Positions 1,554-29,942 of a DNA stretch of 32,000 nucleotides are shown here, one piece after another (position 1 is the first letter of the stretch; each line of letters opens with the position of its first letter). Position numbers and translations under genes: made by a program. The notes under the pieces were generated by a model. The model ran no database searches and had not been told where the DNA came from. It saw nothing but the letters and a program-made list of their open reading frames with translations. This DNA is from Paramicrosporidium saccamoebae KSL3. Its lineage: Eukaryota; Fungi; Cryptomycota. Location of the stretch: NCBI GenBank assembly GCA_002794465.1, contig MTSL01000142.1:10093-42092 (forward strand). Direction: 5' to 3'.

Positions 1554-2273
1554 TTATTTTTGCAAAAGACTATCAATCTGTTGCAGCCAATCTCGGGTAC
1601 TGTTGCGATTCTGCGCAGTCACCAGTCTTCCATCCACAACTACGTTATTGGCAAACTTTTCAGTCTTCTTAAAGTGGGCACCAACTTCCTCCAGCCGTTT
1701 CTGGATGGAGAATGGCAGCATCTTTTCCAACCGCATATCGTGATCCTCCTCCAAAGTGTTGGCAGTTACCTTTTTGTTCTTGATCCACGGCTCGCCCTGC
1801 TCGTCCCACAATGACAGCAAGGCTGCTGCACCGTGTCCGATTGTGGCCACCATTCCACCGCGTCCCCAAATGTCCTTAACTACCTGTGCCACGCGTCGAC
1901 CGGCAAAATCAAACATTGCTCCGGGACCTCCCACGAAAACAACTGCCTGGAACCGACCCAAATCAAAGGCGCCCATCCGATCAGTGCACTTTGTCCATTG
2001 CATCGCACACGGGTCCGCCAGGAATGCCTGCACTTCCTCCTCGTGCTCCGAGGCTTTAAGGGAAGAGGGATCGATAGTGCATTCCCCACCTGACGGGCTT
2101 GCCAAGTTCACTTCGAGACCCAATGTCTTTTGGAAGTACTGATAGGCAAGGGCGGCCTCTTTGACGTCATAGCCAGTGCGACGGGATTCGTTACTGGTAG
2201 GGTCGCCGGCGGGTTGCAGCTCTTTCGTGTTTGTCAGAACAATCAATACAGCCTTTCCATGATCAACCGTCAT
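1554..2273 (-). CDS. Hsp31/DJ-1/PfpI-superfamily (class I glutamine amidotransferase-like) protein, paralogue A; nucleophile Cys replaced by Gly
   Basis: Motifs TGYDVKE, LASPSGG..IDPSS, VFVGGPGAMFD, ATIGHG and VVVDGRLVTAQN. First ATG at 2273 (the ORF track start is TTG). No intron needed. Confidence 0.9.
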   Translation of the reverse strand: MTVDHGKAVLIVLTNTKELQPAGDPTSNESRRTGYDVKEAALAYQYFQKTLGLEVNLASPSGGECTIDPSSLKASEHEEEVQAFLADPCAMQWTKCTDRMGAFDLGRFQAVVFVGGPGAMFDFAGRRVAQVVKDIWGRGGMVATIGHGAAALLSLWDEQGEPWIKNKKVTANTLEEDHDMRLEKMLPFSIQKRLEEVGAHFKKTEKFANNVVVDGRLVTAQNRNSTRDWLQQIDSLLQK

Positions 2274-2399
2274 TGCCACAGTCAACAATGGCCGTAATTG
2301 TGGTCGTGGATCTGCCCTCTTATGGGATTCTCAAAGTCTATCATGTTTATTAAAAAACTGATCGATCCCCCTTGGTAAAAGTCTTTTAGATTAAATCGA

Positions 2400-3526
2400 A
2401 TGACTGAGGTTGTCTGTACTGCTCCTGGAAAAGTAATCTTATTTGGTGAACATTCAATACTCTACGGCAGTGTATCAATATTACAGCAACATTGATATTT
2501 CGGTAGAAAGCCATTGCCTGTGCAATAGACTTGAAGACTACTGTCAAAGTGTCGTCTCTTGGGAAATTGCGGAATGCAGAGATTCATTTACTTGACCTGA
2601 CTGCTGACCCAGTTATACTATCTTTTGACGCTGCCGAGCCAAACCACGAAAAATATGAGAATGACATGGTCAAGTCGTCTTGTCTGTCCATCCTCCATCT
2701 GATTCATGCTATCAACATAAGGTAGAAATTGCATCCCAGCGGTCATTTCAGATGTGGCATAAAGATTATTGTCTCCTCTGAAATACCTATCGGTTCTGGA
2801 CTTGGTTCGTCTGCCGCATTCAGCGTGGCACTCTCCACCGCCCTCCTTACTCACCACCACGGCGACATTGTCGATCAGAGTAAAGTCACCCTGTTGGCGA
2901 GGGAGGCGGAGCAGTTTTTCCATGGTAGGCCTTCTGGCCTGGATACAAGCACCGTGGAGAATGGTGGTATGACAGTAGCCGAGTCGGGTGTATTTCGAAA
3001 GATTCATGGCCATGACTTGGACTTTAATATTCTGATCATAAATACCGCACTCCCAAGGGATACCAAATATATGGTCAACAAGGTGGCCAAATCGCTTCAG
3101 GTCGCACAGTTTGCAATTATAATGATTTAGAATTGCACCAACACTTCGGACGCAATGAAGAATTTGACGTCTGTGGCAAATAGTGGAGTAGATTGTATTC
3201 TCAACCACGACTATCATAGTCTTCCCCCGCTCATAGAGGCAAGTCCATGCGCAAGACTCATCCCTTAGGCTGCTCAGAAATTTCTTGGCAAAATTGGAGC
3301 CTCAAACTCGGATATAGACGAGTTATGCGGGACGCTCAATAACAAGTTTGATCTTTGTTGCAAAATATCTGGGGCTGGAGGGGGTGGGTGTTTGATATCT
3401 GTGGCCATCCCTAAAAGTCTCACAGTGAACGAGATTCGACAGGAGACTGTCAAAATACGTTCCAATTCTTCAGTCTATATATTAGAGCCCACTCCTGTTG
3501 GTGTTTCTATCACAATAACTAAATAA
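2400..3526 (+). CDS. ERG12: Mevalonate kinase (5 exons)
   Basis: GHMP motifs APGKVILFGEHS, EIPIGSGLGSSAA, HGRPSGLD and KISGAGGGGC join in frame across introns of 35 (2472-2506), 30, 30 and 30 nt. The last is a GC-AG intron at 3239-3268. Confidence 0.93.
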
Positions 3527-3562
3527 AACAAAAAGTGCGACTTCTGTGGATTGAACACAGGG

Positions 3563-3601
<39 letters not shown>

Positions 3602-3649
3602 AAGTCGCAACTGACAATGTAAAATTGTAATGTTGATATAAATTATTTT

Positions 3650-4996
3650 TTATAGCAACGCAGTTCCATTGACAAATACCGTGCGTATCCATCTGTCGTC
3701 ACCCAAGAATACAAATCGATGTAGGGATTGTTCAAGAGTTTCGTGCTGATGACGTATGGATGGACAATTGGTCATATCGACCAATAGGGCGTCAAAGAAG
3801 TTGCCCTCTTCAAAGCTGCCCACATCTATACTCAAGGCTTCTGCTCCGCCCCGAGTTGCCAAAAAGAAGGCCTCACTTACTGTGAGCGGCTTACTCTTTT
3901 GATCGCTAAAGTGCAGCGTCTTGGATGCAATGATGGCTTGACGCATGGCGTCCAAGATGGAGAGACCATATCCACCGGATACGTCACTGCCCAGTCCCAC
4001 AGGGATACCTGCGGCGGCCAACGCTCTGAGATCTGCAACACCACTGTTCAGAGCAAAGTTGGACGTGGGACAGTGTGAGACGGCGGTTCCGCTGTTTGAA
4101 AGAAGCGCGCGTTGAGCTTCATTCAAGTGTACACAATGGGCGAGGAATGTTTTTCTTGTTAACAATCCGACAGAAGAGTAGATGGAGGCATAGTTGTGGC
4201 ACTCGGGGAATAACTCTTTGGAAAACTGAATCTCGTCAAGGTTTTCCGACATGTGTGTTTGGATGTGCACGTCTGTCGAGATGGCAATTTCAGCCAACTT
4301 TTCCATAGAATCACGTGAACAAGTCAGTGCAAAGCGCGGCGTCACTACAGGCAGAACTCGGCCCGGGATCTCAAGAGATGCGTCGCACTTTTTCACGTAT
4401 TCGACAAATTCACGAGTAGCCTGGACAGAGTCTGCAGTGCTCTCCACATAGTCTGACGGGGAGTTGCAATCCATGCAGGTTTTTCCTATGAGTGCACGTT
4501 GTCCCAGCTGGACGACCTGCTGCACCAACACTCGATTTGCTTCAGCATGCAACCCACCAAAATAACAGCATGTGGTTGTTCCGTATCGTAGATAGTGTCG
4601 CACCATGTGTCCATAAATGTGTGCGACACGGGCATTGTGTTCCGAGGGCGACTCGTGGGGCTGACGGGCGTAGGAGCGTTCTTCAGGAAAGGTCACCTTT
4701 TGCAGCCATTCAAGGAGAGTGTAATCGAGTCCTAGGCCGAGGTTCCGATATTGCGGCGCATGAGTATGCATATCAATGAATCCTGGTGTCAGGAACTGTT
4801 CGGGAGACAATTTTACCAGCTTGTGGTCAGTGGAAAGTGTAGTGATGGCAGTCTGAAGGGCCTCGGCGGATTCAAATTGCTGAACGCTGTTTATTCTCCC
4901 CGTCTGGTCATCAACACTAACCATTCCATGGTTGATAAAGTCCACTTTGGAAAATGACTTTGGATTGATAAAGGCTCCCACATAGACTGTAATCAT
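3650..4996 (-). CDS. GUD1: Guanine deaminase (amidohydrolase superfamily)
   Basis: PGFIDMHTHAPQY, VTPRFA, HIQTHMSEN, AHCVHL, HCPTSNFAL and GLGSDVSGG metal-binding motifs; intronless 448 aa. Confidence 0.93.
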   Translation of the reverse strand: MITVYVGAFINPKSFSKVDFINHGMVSVDDQTGRINSVQQFESAEALQTAITTLSTDHKLVKLSPEQFLTPGFIDMHTHAPQYRNLGLGLDYTLLEWLQKVTFPEERSYARQPHESPSEHNARVAHIYGHMVRHYLRYGTTTCCYFGGLHAEANRVLVQQVVQLGQRALIGKTCMDCNSPSDYVESTADSVQATREFVEYVKKCDASLEIPGRVLPVVTPRFALTCSRDSMEKLAEIAISTDVHIQTHMSENLDEIQFSKELFPECHNYASIYSSVGLLTRKTFLAHCVHLNEAQRALLSNSGTAVSHCPTSNFALNSGVADLRALAAAGIPVGLGSDVSGGYGLSILDAMRQAIIASKTLHFSDQKSKPLTVSEAFFLATRGGAEALSIDVGSFEEGNFFDALLVDMTNCPSIRHQHETLEQSLHRFVFLGDDRWIRTVFVNGTALL

Positions 4997-5140
4997 TCCA
5001 ATATTCTGACTGCTCTATCGCTGATATCCCGGTTATCGGGCCCAATGCTCCTAAATCCGGCTCGAATAATCACATCCGGTTTTAAATCATAACTCTCGGG
5101 TTAAAATCATAATAGCTGGCTTATAAGACCCCCTTTTAAT

Positions 5141-5196
5141 GCCTGACTTGTAACACCCGACTTGTAGTGCCCGACTTTTAATAGCCGACTTGTAAT
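5141..5196. repeat. 14-bp tandem repeat, 4 copies (core CCGACTTGTA), in the GUD1/DTD1 divergent intergenic region
   Basis: GACTT(G/T)T recurs at 5145, 5159, 5173 and 5187. Confidence 0.85.
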
Positions 5197-5231
5197 CATA
5201 ATACTTTGCTATTTACATTAAATCCCTGGCC

Positions 5232-5715
5232 ATGCGGATCGTCCTGCAACGTGTCTCTCGTGCTTCCGTCACCGGTACCCCCCCAGTTGTCCTCTTATTT
5301 TTCAGTCAATGAACAGGTGGTTGGATCCATACAAAAGGGCGTTTGTTTGCTGATAGGAATACATCGTCAAGACACTCTCGAAGATGCCTCCATACTGGTC
5401 AAAAAGATTCTCAAACTGCGTCTCTGGCCTACAGACCGGCAATGGCAAGCCAACTTGAGCGAAATTGACGGTTCAGTCCTGGCAGTGTCCCAGTTTACGC
5501 TGTATGCCATCACAGACAAGGGAGCCAAGCCGAATTTCTACGATGCGATGGGGACAGAGGAGGCACGCACAATGTTTAACCAGATAGTCCAGATGCTCAG
5601 AGAGAGTCTTCCGGGAAGGGTGGAGACGGGCGCGTTTGGCGAGCTAATGAACGTAGACATTTGCAACGACGGACCCGTCACCTTGGTCCTAGAATCCAGA
5701 TGTAACGCTCAGTGA
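5232..5715 (+). CDS. DTD1: D-aminoacyl-tRNA deacylase (2 exons)
   Basis: MRIVLQRVSRASVT + 31-nt intron (5275-5305) + VNEQVVGSI. SQFTL and NDGPVT (Gly-cisPro) motifs present. Confidence 0.95.
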
Positions 5716-5752
5716 GAGAATTAATAATAATAAATGATCATATCCCCAACCT

Positions 5753-5817
5753 CAAGTCCCAATGGCAAGCTCCAATGGCAAGTTCCAGTGACAAGCTCCG
5801 GTGGCAAGTTCCAATGG
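5753..5817. repeat. 13-bp tandem repeat, 5 copies (CAAGYTCCARTGG), between convergent DTD1 and DJ-1 paralogue B
   Basis: Units begin at 5753, 5766, 5779, 5792 and 5805. Confidence 0.9.
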
Positions 5818-5863
5818 CAATGGGCATTTATTGAAGCAAGTCTTTTACGTCGATTCGTGGCGG

Positions 5864-6742
5864 TTAGCGACGGATCTGTTCGATAATCTTGCTGACAAAC
5901 TCGTGGATAGAGGGCGCATTCTGGGCCGTGATTAAACGCTCGTCAATGACAACATTGGTCTCGAACGGCTTCTTGATCTCAGTCTTGGCACCACGCTCCT
6001 TCACACGCTCTTCTAGATAGAAAGGCAGATACTTTTCATAGCCCGTCTGTCGCTCCTCCTCCTTGGAGAAGCAGGTGATCCGCTTACCCTTAATCAACCA
6101 ATCGCCACGTCGCTCCATGCGCACATTGAGCAGGCCAGCAACTCCATGCCCAATGGCTGCCACAACACCATTGCGCTTGTAAATCTCGGCAATGGTACAG
6201 GCAACATCGTCATGTTCTGGAAGATCAAACATGGCTCCATGACCACCGGGGAGGATGACCATCTTGAACTCTTCAGGCTTCACCCAACTGATGGGAACAG
6301 TATGGCCCATCTTGGCGATAAAGTCGCGCTCATCTCGCAGATTATCACGGAGCTTAGAGTCCTTCTCAATACGTTCCATGGAGAGCGGATCGGCAGCAAC
6401 GGGTCCACCACGAGGGGTAGCAAAGACAAGCTCCATGTTGTACTGCTTCTTCAGTGTCATCCAAATGTAGCCCAACTCAAAGACATCCACACCAGTAGGC
6501 TGATGGCTGGCACCAAAGGTCGTCTCAGTGCCCTGGATGGCAGAGTAGTTGGTGGGCGGATCCATAATGGTGGGCTGCGAGGGCAGCCACGCAGAGGGAG
6601 ATCCAGGCACAACGGGTCCGTTTTCGTTGTTCATAGAGGTCGTTCCATCCTGGGAAAGACGACGTCCGCCACGGCCCGACTTGGGCAAATAGGCCTCGTT
6701 GGTGAGGATAATTAGGGCCTTCTTGTTTGCTAGGTTTTCCAT
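5864..6742 (-). CDS. Hsp31/DJ-1-family protein, paralogue B; Cys replaced by Gly; long low-complexity N-terminal insertion
   Basis: TGVDVFE, FATPRGGPVAADP, ILPGGHGAMFDL, AAIGHG and VVIDERLITAQN. First ATG at 6742. Confidence 0.9.
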   Translation of the reverse strand: MENLANKKALIILTNEAYLPKSGRGGRRLSQDGTTSMNNENGPVVPGSPSAWLPSQPTIMDPPTNYSAIQGTETTFGASHQPTGVDVFELGYIWMTLKKQYNMELVFATPRGGPVAADPLSMERIEKDSKLRDNLRDERDFIAKMGHTVPISWVKPEEFKMVILPGGHGAMFDLPEHDDVACTIAEIYKRNGVVAAIGHGVAGLLNVRMERRGDWLIKGKRITCFSKEEERQTGYEKYLPFYLEERVKERGAKTEIKKPFETNVVIDERLITAQNAPSIHEFVSKIIEQIRR

Positions 6743-6939
6743 TTGGTATCTGGATGGCTCAGCCAAGCACGTCCCTTTATATGCCTCGACTCATATACAA
6801 TCACTGCATTTATCACACTGATTTCAATGTACACTGATAAATTGCCGTGGAGTATAAAAGGCGTCTTGTTCAGACCCTCCCGTACCCGAGCCAAGCTCGA
6901 TAATTCACCACGAACTACCTAAAAAGCTTTGTCGACAAA

Positions 6940-7665
6940 ATGTCCCACTCCCACAGCCACGTTCTCGTCGTCCTCACCAACACCCGTGACCTGCCCTCCA
7001 CCGGTCGTGATACTGAAGATGCCAACCCCCGCACCGGTTTTGATGTCAAGGAAGTCGCTTATCTTTACGAGTGTCTGACCAAGGAGCACAAGATTGAGCT
7101 CATCTTTGCCTCCCCCAAGGGTGGTGAGGCCTACATTGATCCCTGCAGCATGGATGCCAGTCGCAATGACGAGATTGTCGCAAAGTTCATGAAGGATCAG
7201 GACGCCATGCAGAAGATCAAGAACACCAAGAAGCTCCGTGATGTCCGCAGTCAAAAGTTCCTGGGTGCCGTCTTCCCCGGCGGTGCTGGTGTGTTGATCG
7301 ACTTGCCCAACGAGTCCATGGTCAACGACATTGTCCAGGAAATCTATCCCCGTCACGAGGGATTCATTGCTGCCATTGGTCACGGTCTTGCCGCCCTGTT
7401 GAACGTCAAGAGCGAAAAGGGCGACTTGTGGCTCCGGGGCAAGCGCGTCACCTGTCAGACATTAGAAGAAGAGAAGGAGCTGAAGCTGGAGCGTGCCCTC
7501 CCCTTCATGATCGAGGACAAGCTCAAGCAGATTGGTGCCAAATTTGAAAAGGCCACCAAATTCCAACCTTACGTCGTTGAGGATGAGCGTCTCATCACTG
7601 CCCAGAACAACTACTCGGTCAAGGAGTGGGTTACTGCAATTAAGCGCCATTGTCGTATGAACTAA
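6940..7665 (+). CDS. Hsp31/DJ-1-family protein, paralogue C; Cys replaced by Gly
   Basis: TGFDVKE, FASPKGGEAYIDP, VFPGGAGVLIDL, AAIGHG and VVEDERLITAQN. Divergent from paralogue B across 197 bp. Confidence 0.9.
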   Translation: MSHSHSHVLVVLTNTRDLPSTGRDTEDANPRTGFDVKEVAYLYECLTKEHKIELIFASPKGGEAYIDPCSMDASRNDEIVAKFMKDQDAMQKIKNTKKLRDVRSQKFLGAVFPGGAGVLIDLPNESMVNDIVQEIYPRHEGFIAAIGHGLAALLNVKSEKGDLWLRGKRVTCQTLEEEKELKLERALPFMIEDKLKQIGAKFEKATKFQPYVVEDERLITAQNNYSVKEWVTAIKRHCRMN

Positions 7666-7885: not shown

Positions 7886-8758
7886 TTAGATTGCAACTTG
7901 CTTGCTTGTCACCAAATAATCAGCAGTCTTGCCAAGCTCACTTAATAATGAGTCGTAGTATTTTCGATACAGTTCGCTGTCGATATCGACTGGCTGATCT
8001 GACCTCATGAGCCAAACATGGCACAGCTCGAGATTACCAATAAGCGAGTCTCTCAAAAAAACGGGACAATTGGGTTGAAGAATAATTTTGTTACAGGCCG
8101 AGGCAATATGCTGTTTCGCCTTGAGATTAGATGTCGTCATTAGGGCTTGACCAAGTCGAAGACAGAGCTTGGACCAGCTGATATGCTCCAATTCAAAGGT
8201 AACAACCTCGCTCATGGCATCTGCAAGTGTCCACAGAACCTTTCCGGGGAGATCAGATCTCTTCAGAATCATATCTGCTAGGCTAGTAAAACAATCAAGA
8301 CGCTCGGCTGGCAATTTCGCACTCAGGCGGGTCAGAGCAGGTAGCAATTCAAACCTCACACTGCCTCCAATCCTCATAATGCGATCTACTACAGTTTCGA
8401 GAAAGTCGATCATCTGAGGGGATGAACAGTCCTCCTTGGTCGCCATCTCCGCGAGCACCCAAAGTACTTTTTCAAGAACCTCCACATTCATTTCCGCCAG
8501 TGAGATTCCAAGAACTGCACGGACAACATCTCCTTTGATATATTCTCCAAGTTTACTCCATACTTGAAACATTATTTGCAATGCAGACAAACAAAACGCC
8601 CTCTCTCCAACCAGATTGGCCATCCTCCCCAACCACCTCACCGAATCCCTCCAATAATCCACATCCTGCACTCCCCCCGCCAGGACCGACAGTGCCTCTC
8701 TGATAGTCTCCAATCCCTTTTGATATCCATCCATTTTGGCGGGCTTCACCCTGGCCAT
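7886..8758 (-). CDS. Hypothetical all-alpha (HEAT/ARM-like) protein
   Basis: 290-aa ORF with Leu-rich amphipathic helices. No family recognised. The start could be 8758 or 8734. Confidence 0.6.
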   Translation of the reverse strand: MARVKPAKMDGYQKGLETIREALSVLAGGVQDVDYWRDSVRWLGRMANLVGERAFCLSALQIMFQVWSKLGEYIKGDVVRAVLGISLAEMNVEVLEKVLWVLAEMATKEDCSSPQMIDFLETVVDRIMRIGGSVRFELLPALTRLSAKLPAERLDCFTSLADMILKRSDLPGKVLWTLADAMSEVVTFELEHISWSKLCLRLGQALMTTSNLKAKQHIASACNKIILQPNCPVFLRDSLIGNLELCHVWLMRSDQPVDIDSELYRKYYDSLLSELGKTADYLVTSKQVAI

Positions 8759-28970: not shown

Positions 28971-29942
28971 ATGAGAACATCAATGAAGGCCGTCCGCGTG
29001 CACACTACGGGTGGAATAGATAAACTGACTATAGAGGAGATTCCTGTGCCTGTTGCAAAACCCGGGGAGGTTGTGGTCAAGAATGCGTTCATCGGAGTCA
29101 ACTACATTGACATTTACCACCGAACTGGACTGTATCCGCTGGCGCTGCCGGTCGTGCTGGGACGCGAAGGCTCGGGAGTAGTGGAATCAGTGGGTGAAGG
29201 CGTTTCGGACCTCGCCGTCGGCGATAGAGTTGGCTATCTTGGCTCGCATTCATATGCCGAGTACAACGCCGTGGCTGCGATACATGTCGTCAAATTGCCC
29301 GCTGGAATGGAGCTTGAGAAGGGGGCCGCGTGTCTGTTGCAGGGTCTGACGGCGGGATATTTGGTATTTGACTCTTACAAAGTGCAACGGGGCGATTTCG
29401 TCGTTGTGCCCGCGGCGGCTGGCGGCACGGGCAGTCTGATTTGTCAATTGGCAAAATTGCAAGGCGCCACTGTGATTGGCATCGTCTCCACTGAGAAAAA
29501 GGTGCAGATTGCCAAGGATAACGGTGCAGCTCATGTCCTTTTAACGTCTGCGGACATTACTGCTGAGATCCTAAAAATCACTGGCGGTCGTGGAGCGCAT
29601 GTCGTGTACGATGGAGTGGGCATGGCTCTCTACGAGCAGCTGAGAAAATCGCTTGGGAAGCGGGGTATGTATGTGAGTTTCGGGAATGCAGGTGGTCTGA
29701 TCGAAAAGGTGAATCCCGCCGATCTCATTCCGAAATGTCTTTCATTCATGCGGCCAGTCCTCTTCCAGTACCTTGAGACCCGAGAGGAGGTTTTGGATCT
29801 CACCTCCAGGGTGCTCCCATTGATTGAATCTGGCAAGTTGAACATTCAAATTCACAAGATTTACGATTTTGACAATGTTGCCCAAGCTCACCAAGACTTG
29901 GAGGGTCGTGGCACCACCGGCAAGCTACTTTTAAAGCTTTAA
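28971..29942 (+). CDS. ZTA1: NADPH:quinone oxidoreductase (zeta-crystallin, MDR family)
   Basis: GVNYIDIYHRTGLY, LGREGSG, LLQGLTA, AAAGGTG, VVYDGVG and TTGKLLL. Confidence 0.9.
   Translation: MRTSMKAVRVHTTGGIDKLTIEEIPVPVAKPGEVVVKNAFIGVNYIDIYHRTGLYPLALPVVLGREGSGVVESVGEGVSDLAVGDRVGYLGSHSYAEYNAVAAIHVVKLPAGMELEKGAACLLQGLTAGYLVFDSYKVQRGDFVVVPAAAGGTGSLICQLAKLQGATVIGIVSTEKKVQIAKDNGAAHVLLTSADITAEILKITGGRGAHVVYDGVGMALYEQLRKSLGKRGMYVSFGNAGGLIEKVNPADLIPKCLSFMRPVLFQYLETREEVLDLTSRVLPLIESGKLNIQIHKIYDFDNVAQAHQDLEGRGTTGKLLLKL

Follow-up and report, generated by a model that had tools for sequence, protein, structure and literature searches.

The window analysed here is a stretch of 32,000 nucleotides from Paramicrosporidium saccamoebae KSL3 (assembly GCA_002794465.1, contig MTSL01000142.1, positions 10,093 to 42,092, forward strand). 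P. saccamoebae (genome accession MTSL00000000) is an intranuclear parasite of amoebae that belongs to the Rozellomycota (PMC5701793). The window carries three genes of the Hsp31/DJ-1 type, here called A, B and C, whose products have a glycine in place of the cysteine at the nucleophile elbow (Table 1; residue numbers are those of C unless stated otherwise). An initial annotation of the locus had pointed out the three DJ-1/PfpI open reading frames (ORFs) and their lack of the catalytic cysteine, and both points are confirmed by the ORFs themselves, by Pfam and by HMMER alignments. It had also read the elbows and their glycine codons as listed in Table 1, with the TGxDVxE motif, the elbow histidine and the GGxG loop kept, and a check of the sequence finds all of these in A, B and C alike. 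The paralogues are diverged, intact and intronless, as had been proposed: their pairwise identity is 37-42%, no ORF has an internal stop, the ATG starts agree with the NCBI gene calls and the annotation gives each gene only one exon. In HMMER alignments to solved structures, the elbow glycine sits opposite the cysteine of the 'aiCHG' motif of 4p5p, 1u9c and yeast Hsp31. Neither DJ-1 nor PfpI occurs as a term in the P. saccamoebae genome paper or its supplements, genes A, B and C are not mentioned there, and the supplements are silent on their expression (PMC5701793).

Table 1. Features of the window discussed in the text (positions are those of the window; aa, amino acids; bp, base pairs)
Feature	Positions	Strand	Remarks
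Gene A	1554-2273	-	239 aa; elbow ATIGHG, GGPG, TGYDVKE, TLEED; ORF and NCBI gene call
Gene B	5864-6742	-	292 aa; elbow AAIGHG; keeps GGHG and Phe173 as in Cys-bearing relatives; ORF and NCBI gene call
Gene C	6940-7665	+	241 aa; elbow AAIGHG, GGAG, TGFDVKE, TLEEE; ORF
Gly146 codon GGA of A	1836-1838	-	nucleophile position; aligned to Cys of 4p5p and 1u9c
Gly198 codon GGG of B	6149-6151	-	nucleophile position, from sequence; B orthologues have GGG, GGA, GGC here
Gly147 codon GGT of C	7378-7380	+	nucleophile position; aligned to Cys of 4p5p, 1u9c and yeast Hsp31
Insert of B	6497-6682	-	about 60 residues (about 21-82) between strand 1 and TG loop; motifs 'SPSAW..P..TI.DPP' and 'F...H..TG'
Putative shared upstream region of B and C	6743-6939		197 bp; candidate promoter region
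TATA-like TATAAAG	6775-6781	-	33 bp from ATG of B
TATA-like TATAAAA	6853-6859	+	81 bp from ATG of C
tRNA-Phe (GAA)	3535-3608	-	between GHMP kinase gene and guanine-deaminase-like gene
290-aa ORF	7886-8758	-	adjoins C; no Pfam match; fast-evolving
Zinc-type dehydrogenase/quinone oxidoreductase	28971-29942	+	Zta1/zeta-crystallin type; best match 3qwa, 2.5e-70

All three proteins pass the gathering score of 26.6 bits for the Pfam family PF01965, DJ-1_PfpI (A, 36.5 bits, E-value 5.5e-9; B, 52.1 bits, 8.9e-14; C, 38.4 bits, 1.5e-9), and all score far below the 365-bit cut-off of NF003168, the NCBIfam equivalogue for HchA (19.1, 50.6 and 42.2 bits for A, B and C). The best HMMER match in the PDB is 4p5p in each case (2.3e-27, 1.7e-29 and 1.1e-35 in the same order; A matches 1u9c at 3.4e-25). 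Over the three queries, 4p5p and 1u9c come at 1e-25 to 1e-35, ahead of fungal Hsp31/Glx3 (1e-8 to 1e-14), and the values for GATD1 lie between 1e-7 and 1e-11. The fold comparison ranks the same proteins at the top. AlphaFold2 models have predicted local distance difference test (pLDDT) scores of 93.9 for C and 92.1 for B, and both models match more than 40 structures of the superfamily with a Foldseek probability of 1.00. With C as query, 4p5p comes first, with a query-normalised template modelling score (TMq) of 0.87 (0.82-0.87 for proteins of the 4p5p/1u9c type), followed by 1u9c, fungal Hsp31/Glx3 and bacterial Hsp31/HchA; GATD1 occupies ranks 43-45 with a TMq of about 0.66. In the model of C, the elbow lies at the end of a strand (residues 142-146) that leads into a helix (147-153), the strand-elbow-helix arrangement of flavodoxin-like folds. 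From these sequence and fold rankings we place A, B and C in the Hsp31 class (class I glutamine amidotransferase-like fold), as members of its short '1u9c-like' subfamily that lack the cysteine.

The closest known proteins are Hsp31-like proteins of bacteria and fungi that go under the name 'type 1 glutamine amidotransferase domain-containing'. Those of the type of 1u9c (Geobacillus APC35852) and 4p5p (Francisella REP24) are about 30-40% identical to A, B and C, have the same length and share with them the TG...E, GGxG...D, xHG, T..EE, P and TxQN motifs. They differ in having the nucleophile cysteine, the histidine of GGHG and an aromatic residue 35, whereas Gly147, Asp35 and a loop insertion mark the window family; A and C, unlike the 1u9c/4p5p type, also lack the GGHG histidine. 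With yeast Hsp31 (1qvv), Candida Glx3 (4lru) and Escherichia coli HchA (1n57) the three proteins share the fold class and the cap region. The equivalents of Glu30, His139 and Glu170 of yeast Hsp31 are retained as Glu38, His148 and Glu178 (Asp in A), whereas the cysteine of the Cys-His-Glu triad is absent, so that the thiol-based glyoxalase chemistry of these enzymes, as it is known, should be impossible for A, B and C.

A glycine at the elbow is the rule among the nearest relatives. With C as query, 45 clusters were retrieved in a word-indexed search, which is incomplete (A and B are not listed among the matches of C). In 38 of these clusters, down to 39% identity, the elbow residue is glycine (37 GHG, one GFG), and cysteine occurs only in the seven at 37% identity or less. 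About 55 further GHG proteins were found with B, and a profile search of 1.84 billion representatives (50% clustering) yielded 7129 relatives, with GHG in some 45 of the best 150. The combined alignment comprises 297 domains, and each of the 136 that belong to the family has the glycine; family members were gathered by the searches with C, with B and with the profile, and four of them are of the A type. Trees were built by neighbour-joining from Kimura distances with the elbow column masked and 100 bootstraps. Even so, the family stands apart from the CHG proteins and from GATD1, at a purity of at least 95%, in 89 of the 100 replicates. Since A, B and C are spread over different sub-branches, a single Cys-to-Gly substitution predates the duplications, and the three glycines of the window represent one ancestral substitution rather than three events. 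All four glycine codons occur at the elbow (19 genes from nine loci), so that conservation concerns the amino acid and not its codon.

The Cys-bearing sequences nearest to the family in the trees, P0131 and P0158, already have Asp35 ('TGFDVRE') and Cys172 ('VTC'), retain CHG and GGHG and are without the loop insert; they resemble the state before the loss. P0131 (contig L015, positions 5001-5750) lies on a compact eukaryotic contig together with Sec63 and UTP25. Because these Cys-bearing relatives share Asp35 and Cys172 with the family, and P0131 lies on eukaryotic DNA, the glycine most likely arose within a eukaryotic lineage rather than by transfer of a bacterial GHG gene. The match to REP24 also brought to mind that A, B and C might come from bacteria or act as effectors. 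This protein is named for the rapid encystment of amoebae and is a putative virulence factor, and P. saccamoebae parasitises amoebae. REP24 keeps its cysteine and its function is unpublished, and we regard the parallel as a coincidence of subfamily membership. Both ideas were dropped, since the nearest Cys-bearing relative is on a eukaryotic contig and, by inspection, strand 1 begins 7-12 residues from the N-terminus, too close for a signal peptide to precede it.

Relatives beyond the window come almost entirely from environmental assemblies, and the contigs inspected consist of compact, gene-dense eukaryotic DNA (metagenomic contigs were assigned to taxa by gene content and synteny). Two of them, L002 (over 20 kilobases, kb) and L010, are collinear with the window and carry all three paralogues; another contig, L013, is 3 kb long and holds nothing besides B, C and the deacylase gene. 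On L005 the family is accompanied by CPSF73, Rpb5 and TRIP13. In a more distant lineage (L007, from GCA_048222815.1, and L008/L009), two adjacent B-like GHG genes lie beside TatD, CDC50 and UCH. Outside Paramicrosporidium, the branch has so far been met only in metagenomic contigs from eukaryotes of similar compactness. To speak of an undescribed system, for which the initial annotation took these genes to be the best candidate, is to overstate the case: what we have is rather an undescribed clade within a known superfamily.

The view that this is an old, selected family and not a set of decaying copies is upheld by the substitution patterns. In comparison with L013, the closest relative (95% identity), C and B have ratios of nonsynonymous to synonymous substitution rates (dN/dS) of 0.044 and 0.039; the dS values of 0.51 and 0.78, respectively, are not saturated, and the ratios speak against neutral evolution and for strong purifying selection. 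When L002 is the reference, dS is saturated in A and in the guanine deaminase gene. The closer L013 was used for B and C; for A, no relative closer than L002 was found. Against L002, the proportions of nonsynonymous and synonymous differences (pN/pS) are 0.22/0.88 for A, 0.15/0.68 for B and 0.14/0.55 for C, pN lying far below pS in all three. The synonymous turnover of the elbow codon points the same way. Protein identities to L002 and L010 are 78% and 66% for B, 79% and 60% for C, and about 68-69% and 67% for A. Among the neighbours, the corresponding values are 70% and 65% for CDC50, 69% and 70% for dynein LC8, 62% and 55% for the D-Tyr deacylase, 61% and 52% for the guanine deaminase and 46% and 35% for an unassigned gene. 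Against L002, B and C exceed every neighbour compared; against L010, dynein LC8 (70%) is above both and CDC50 (65%) is above C.

Apart from the nucleophile, most of the active site has been kept. Within the family, Glu38 is retained in 88% of the sequences, His148 in 98%, Glu177 in 99% and Glu178 in 91%, approximately the level of the CHG enzymes, and the same is true of Thr32-Gly33, Gly114, Gly117, Asp121, Pro188, Thr220, Gln222, Asn223 and Ser226. Glu38 aligns to Glu30 of yeast Hsp31 and is the equivalent of Glu18 of DJ-1, the glutamate that in Hsp31 and DJ-1 makes contact with the cysteine; Glu178, the triad acid within the EE motif, aligns to yeast Glu170. The fixed changes are Cys147 to Gly (100%), Trp/Tyr35 to Asp (85%), Val146 to Ile, Gly221 to Ala and the insertion of a loop of at least seven residues at positions 19-25. 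B-type proteins keep the GGHG histidine (or Tyr/Arg), the histidine being a metal ligand in E. coli Hsp31, along with Phe173; the A and C types have Pro or Ala and Asn or Gln at these two places. The B family also has a nearly invariant His147 (in 'GHT'), Trp94 and a conserved histidine ahead of the TG loop. The pocket is thus remodelled and is predicted to be more polar and more acidic. GATD1, which likewise has a GHG elbow (8a3p reads 'icavGHGvaal', as the initial annotation had stated), is conserved across vertebrates and carries a different signature, Ser38, Leu178, Cys155 and 'PSCPG', where the window family has Glu38, Glu178, Asn155 and GG(A/P/H)G. The nucleophile being gone while the rest of the site is retained and the pocket is acidified, unlike in GATD1, we infer that the pocket still matters. 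Cys172, which is 88% conserved, was considered as a relocated nucleophile. This idea is weakened by the presence of Cys172 in the Cys-bearing P0131 and P0158 and in 19% of the CHG relatives, and by its absence from the A type.

Genes B and C stand head-to-head, separated by a short intergenic region with a TATA-like element on either strand (Table 1). The arrangement recurs in seven other contigs (L002, L003, L004, L010, L011, L012 and L013), with spacers of 162-338 bp and C proteins that are 46-95% identical to C of the window; the pair as such can be followed down to an identity of 46-51%. The G+C (GC) content of the contigs that carry the pair ranges from 31% (L011) to 61% (L012), and in L011 the pair is intact even though its flanks (amidohydrolase, GHMP kinase and deacylase) are rearranged. 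Contigs of matching length occur in the match lists for C and B, which suggests that further contigs are common to both. Conserved divergent pairs of paralogues are typical of co-expressed partners. The divergent orientation, the short shared upstream region and the maintenance of the arrangement across deep divergence make it most likely that B and C act together; indirectly, they point to a joint function, possibly in a hetero-oligomer, which was one of the options named in the initial annotation.

B is further distinguished by its insert, which is absent from A, from C and from all Cys-bearing relatives. An in-frame intron that had escaped splicing was rejected as the explanation: the segment is conserved at the protein level in L002 and about 30 B-type sequences, and it is modelled mostly with confidence (pLDDT 81-94 for residues 41-82, low only in 21-40), so that it counts as coding and is predicted to be ordered for the most part. 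Judging from the topology, the insert should lie near the pocket entrance, where it may form a lid or an interface element.

How might these proteins work? In Hsp31 the enzyme chemistry depends on the triad and the chaperone activity does not (PMC4981205). Glyoxalase-type chemistry would accordingly be gone from A, B and C, whereas a holdase capacity could be shared with Hsp31. With a probability of roughly 55%, we favor the reading that A, B and C are a selected, Cys-less offshoot of Hsp31 in which thiol chemistry has been lost, the pocket binds a ligand or catalyses a thiol-independent reaction, and B and C cooperate. In this scheme, the nucleophile cysteine was replaced by glycine once, most likely in a eukaryotic lineage and before A, B and C separated, and the glycine has since been kept under strong purifying selection. 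Thiol-based reactions (glyoxalase III, deglycase, amidase) would have disappeared, so that the three proteins could be called pseudo-enzymes, and the triad-independent holdase capacity of Hsp31 may have persisted. The enlarged, more acidic pocket would serve as a binding site and possibly as a thiol-independent catalytic site. B and C would be co-expressed partners, probably joined in a hetero-oligomer in which some 40 additional, ordered residues close to the entrance of the pocket would come from B, and A might be a third, less widespread partner or variant.

Several observations weigh against this reading. The retained glutamates and histidine may serve the structure of the proteins and not their function. 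In compact genomes, neighbouring paralogues may be maintained even if their products form no complex, and the pair found in the L007/L008 lineage is a tandem of two B-like genes, not a B/C pair. Finally, the deep nodes of the neighbour-joining trees are poorly supported, and a very old common origin with GATD1, which joins the window family in 23 of the 100 bootstraps, is possible.

One could envision instead, more tentatively, that A, B and C are pure non-catalytic holdases or scaffolds: homodimers that act through their surfaces only, with a pocket that has no role and a B/C adjacency that is an inert remnant of tandem duplication. The independence of the Hsp31 chaperone activity from the triad (PMC4981205) would be in keeping with this, and so would the case of GATD1, which as Fy-5 is a structural dimer in the FERRY complex (bioRxiv 10.1101/2021.06.21.449265) and may be taken, by analogy, as a precedent for a Cys-less member that is selected as a non-catalytic subunit. 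However, such an account leaves unexplained the 88-99% retention of Glu38, His148 and Glu177/178, two of which (Glu38 and Glu178) were replaced in the scaffold protein GATD1. Compact genomes do keep blocks of synteny, the TatD-CDC50...UCH neighbourhood being an example, but the B/C pair outlasts the rearrangement of its flanks and a shift in GC content from 31 to 61%.

It is doubtful, although conceivable, that the three proteins are fully fledged thiol-independent enzymes, in which water is activated by the His-Glu couple or by a metal that the acidic and His-rich pocket would hold, or in which an external thiol occupies the cavity left by the glycine. Such enzymes would account for the conserved acidic pocket with Asp35, Glu38, His148 and Glu177/178, for the three histidines of the B family (His147, that of GGHG and that before the TG loop) and for the very high conservation, which in B and C exceeds that of the neighbours in the comparison with L002. 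Yet A and C have lost the GGHG histidine, and Cys172 does not qualify as a new nucleophile, as it predates the loss. We know of no precedent for a thiol-independent enzyme in this superfamily. A bolder and equally speculative proposal is that B and C form an obligate hetero-oligomer with a remodelled acidic, His-rich pocket made up of Asp35, Glu38, His148 and Glu177/178, joined in B by the GGHG histidine and His147 beneath the ordered insert. The ligand of this pocket would be a metal or a cationic metabolite, and its task a reaction that needs no thiol, or sensing. If so, the activity of such an obligate heteromer would be new for the DJ-1/Hsp31 fold and essential to Paramicrosporidium-like intracellular parasites.

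There is, in our view, very little chance that A, B and C are divergent orthologues of GATD1 that share its glycine by descent and serve a FERRY-like complex. The two groups have the GHG elbow in common, proline replaces the GGHG histidine both in A and in GATD1, and they are grouped together in the minority of bootstraps mentioned above; in sequence and fold, however, A, B and C are much nearer to Cys-bearing proteins of the Hsp31 type, and GATD1 is without Glu38 and Glu178. In the trees GATD1 forms its own clade (bootstrap 84), made up of vertebrate sequences, which account for almost the whole sample, the Nematostella homologue P0401 and P0402, a protein from an Erysipelotrichaceae metagenome-assembled genome. 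The presence of this bacterial protein is odd and could reflect contamination or gene transfer. The mean distance between the window family and GATD1 (2.17) is close to that between the CHG proteins and GATD1 (2.24) and is uninformative as to a special relationship. GATD1 also occurs in different taxa, and according to the authors of the FERRY study Fy-4 and Fy-5 date back to the emergence of Chordata (bioRxiv 10.1101/2021.06.20.449167). The partners of GATD1 in FERRY include Ppp1r21, which has a binding site for Fy-5, and CRYZL1. A link to FERRY was sought through CRYZL1 and was discarded, as the only ADH_zinc_N gene of the window, at 28971-29942, is of the Zta1 type and not CRYZL1. Hence, to the question raised by the initial annotation, whether the three genes are plain GATD1 orthologues, HMMER, Foldseek, the tree and the residue signature give the same negative answer. 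As for decay, neutral drift of duplicates or a sequencing or annotation artefact, the loss of a catalytic residue is its usual first sign, but with intact ORFs, a dN/dS near 0.04, a glycine codon that turns over synonymously and the same glycine in all 136 relatives from independent assemblies, this explanation deserves practically no credence.

The replacement of cysteine by glycine has occurred more than once in the superfamily, which also bears on descent from GATD1. At least one bacterial clade acquired it independently: the GHG variants P0384 and P0386 are nested within a CHG clade with bootstraps of 97-98. P0386 (contig L017, positions 5001-5729) has an AraC-type regulator and a cupin as its neighbours; the bacterial contig, of 309 kb, also encodes a protein with a Por secretion tail. 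A separate origin of the glycine is probable for P0142, too, and for one domain of P0062, a tandem protein. These other GHG members are nested among Cys-bearing proteins and, in contrast to the window family, form neither a large family of paralogues nor a conserved pair. The independent replacements at the nucleophile position show that glycine is the recurrent, viable substitute there. The position has a strained backbone conformation, so that glycine is expected. Tandem proteins with two to four Hsp31-like domains were also seen (P0062, 588 residues; P0068, 729 residues; P0055-P0066). Some of them join a CHG domain to a GHG or otherwise degenerate one, as in P0062 (CAICHG and AAIGHG) and P0066 (AALDNA and SAVCHG). 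Such fusions may be viewed as a fused analogue of a pair of active and inactive proteins.

The DJ-1/Hsp31 superfamily is in practice defined by its reactive cysteine, and debates about the 'real' function of its members centre on this residue. A large natural clade that lacks it, while keeping the other catalytic residues, and that has multiplied into fixed pairs of paralogues, is in effect nature's own test of the role of the fold once the thiol is gone, be it chaperoning, ligand binding or some other catalysis. It makes a useful contrast to GATD1, from whose site more is missing. For research on rozellids and early microsporidia, the clade represents a lineage-specific and apparently important gene family. 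A word of caution concerns annotation: matches of C bear the Joint Genome Institute (JGI) name 'intracellular protease/amidase', and for genes of the A, B and C type this label, like that of glyoxalase, is better avoided.

The genes that surround the paralogues in the window are ordinary eukaryotic genes: UCH, TatD, CDC50, a GHMP kinase, a guanine-deaminase-like amidohydrolase, D-Tyr-tRNA deacylase and dynein LC8. The 290-residue ORF that adjoins C was considered as a third component of the B/C system and rejected, as it is only 46% identical in L002 and 35% in L010, and no copy was detected alongside B and C in either L011 or L012. In the distant L007/L008 lineage, a conserved gene of 192-198 residues with the C-terminal sequence 'CFCC' and no Pfam match lies between the two GHG paralogues (L007, 10758-11336; L008, 10976-11572). 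The TatD-CDC50 ... UCH surroundings of the paralogues are kept in L001/L002 as well as in this lineage, which indicates that the position of the cluster is old.

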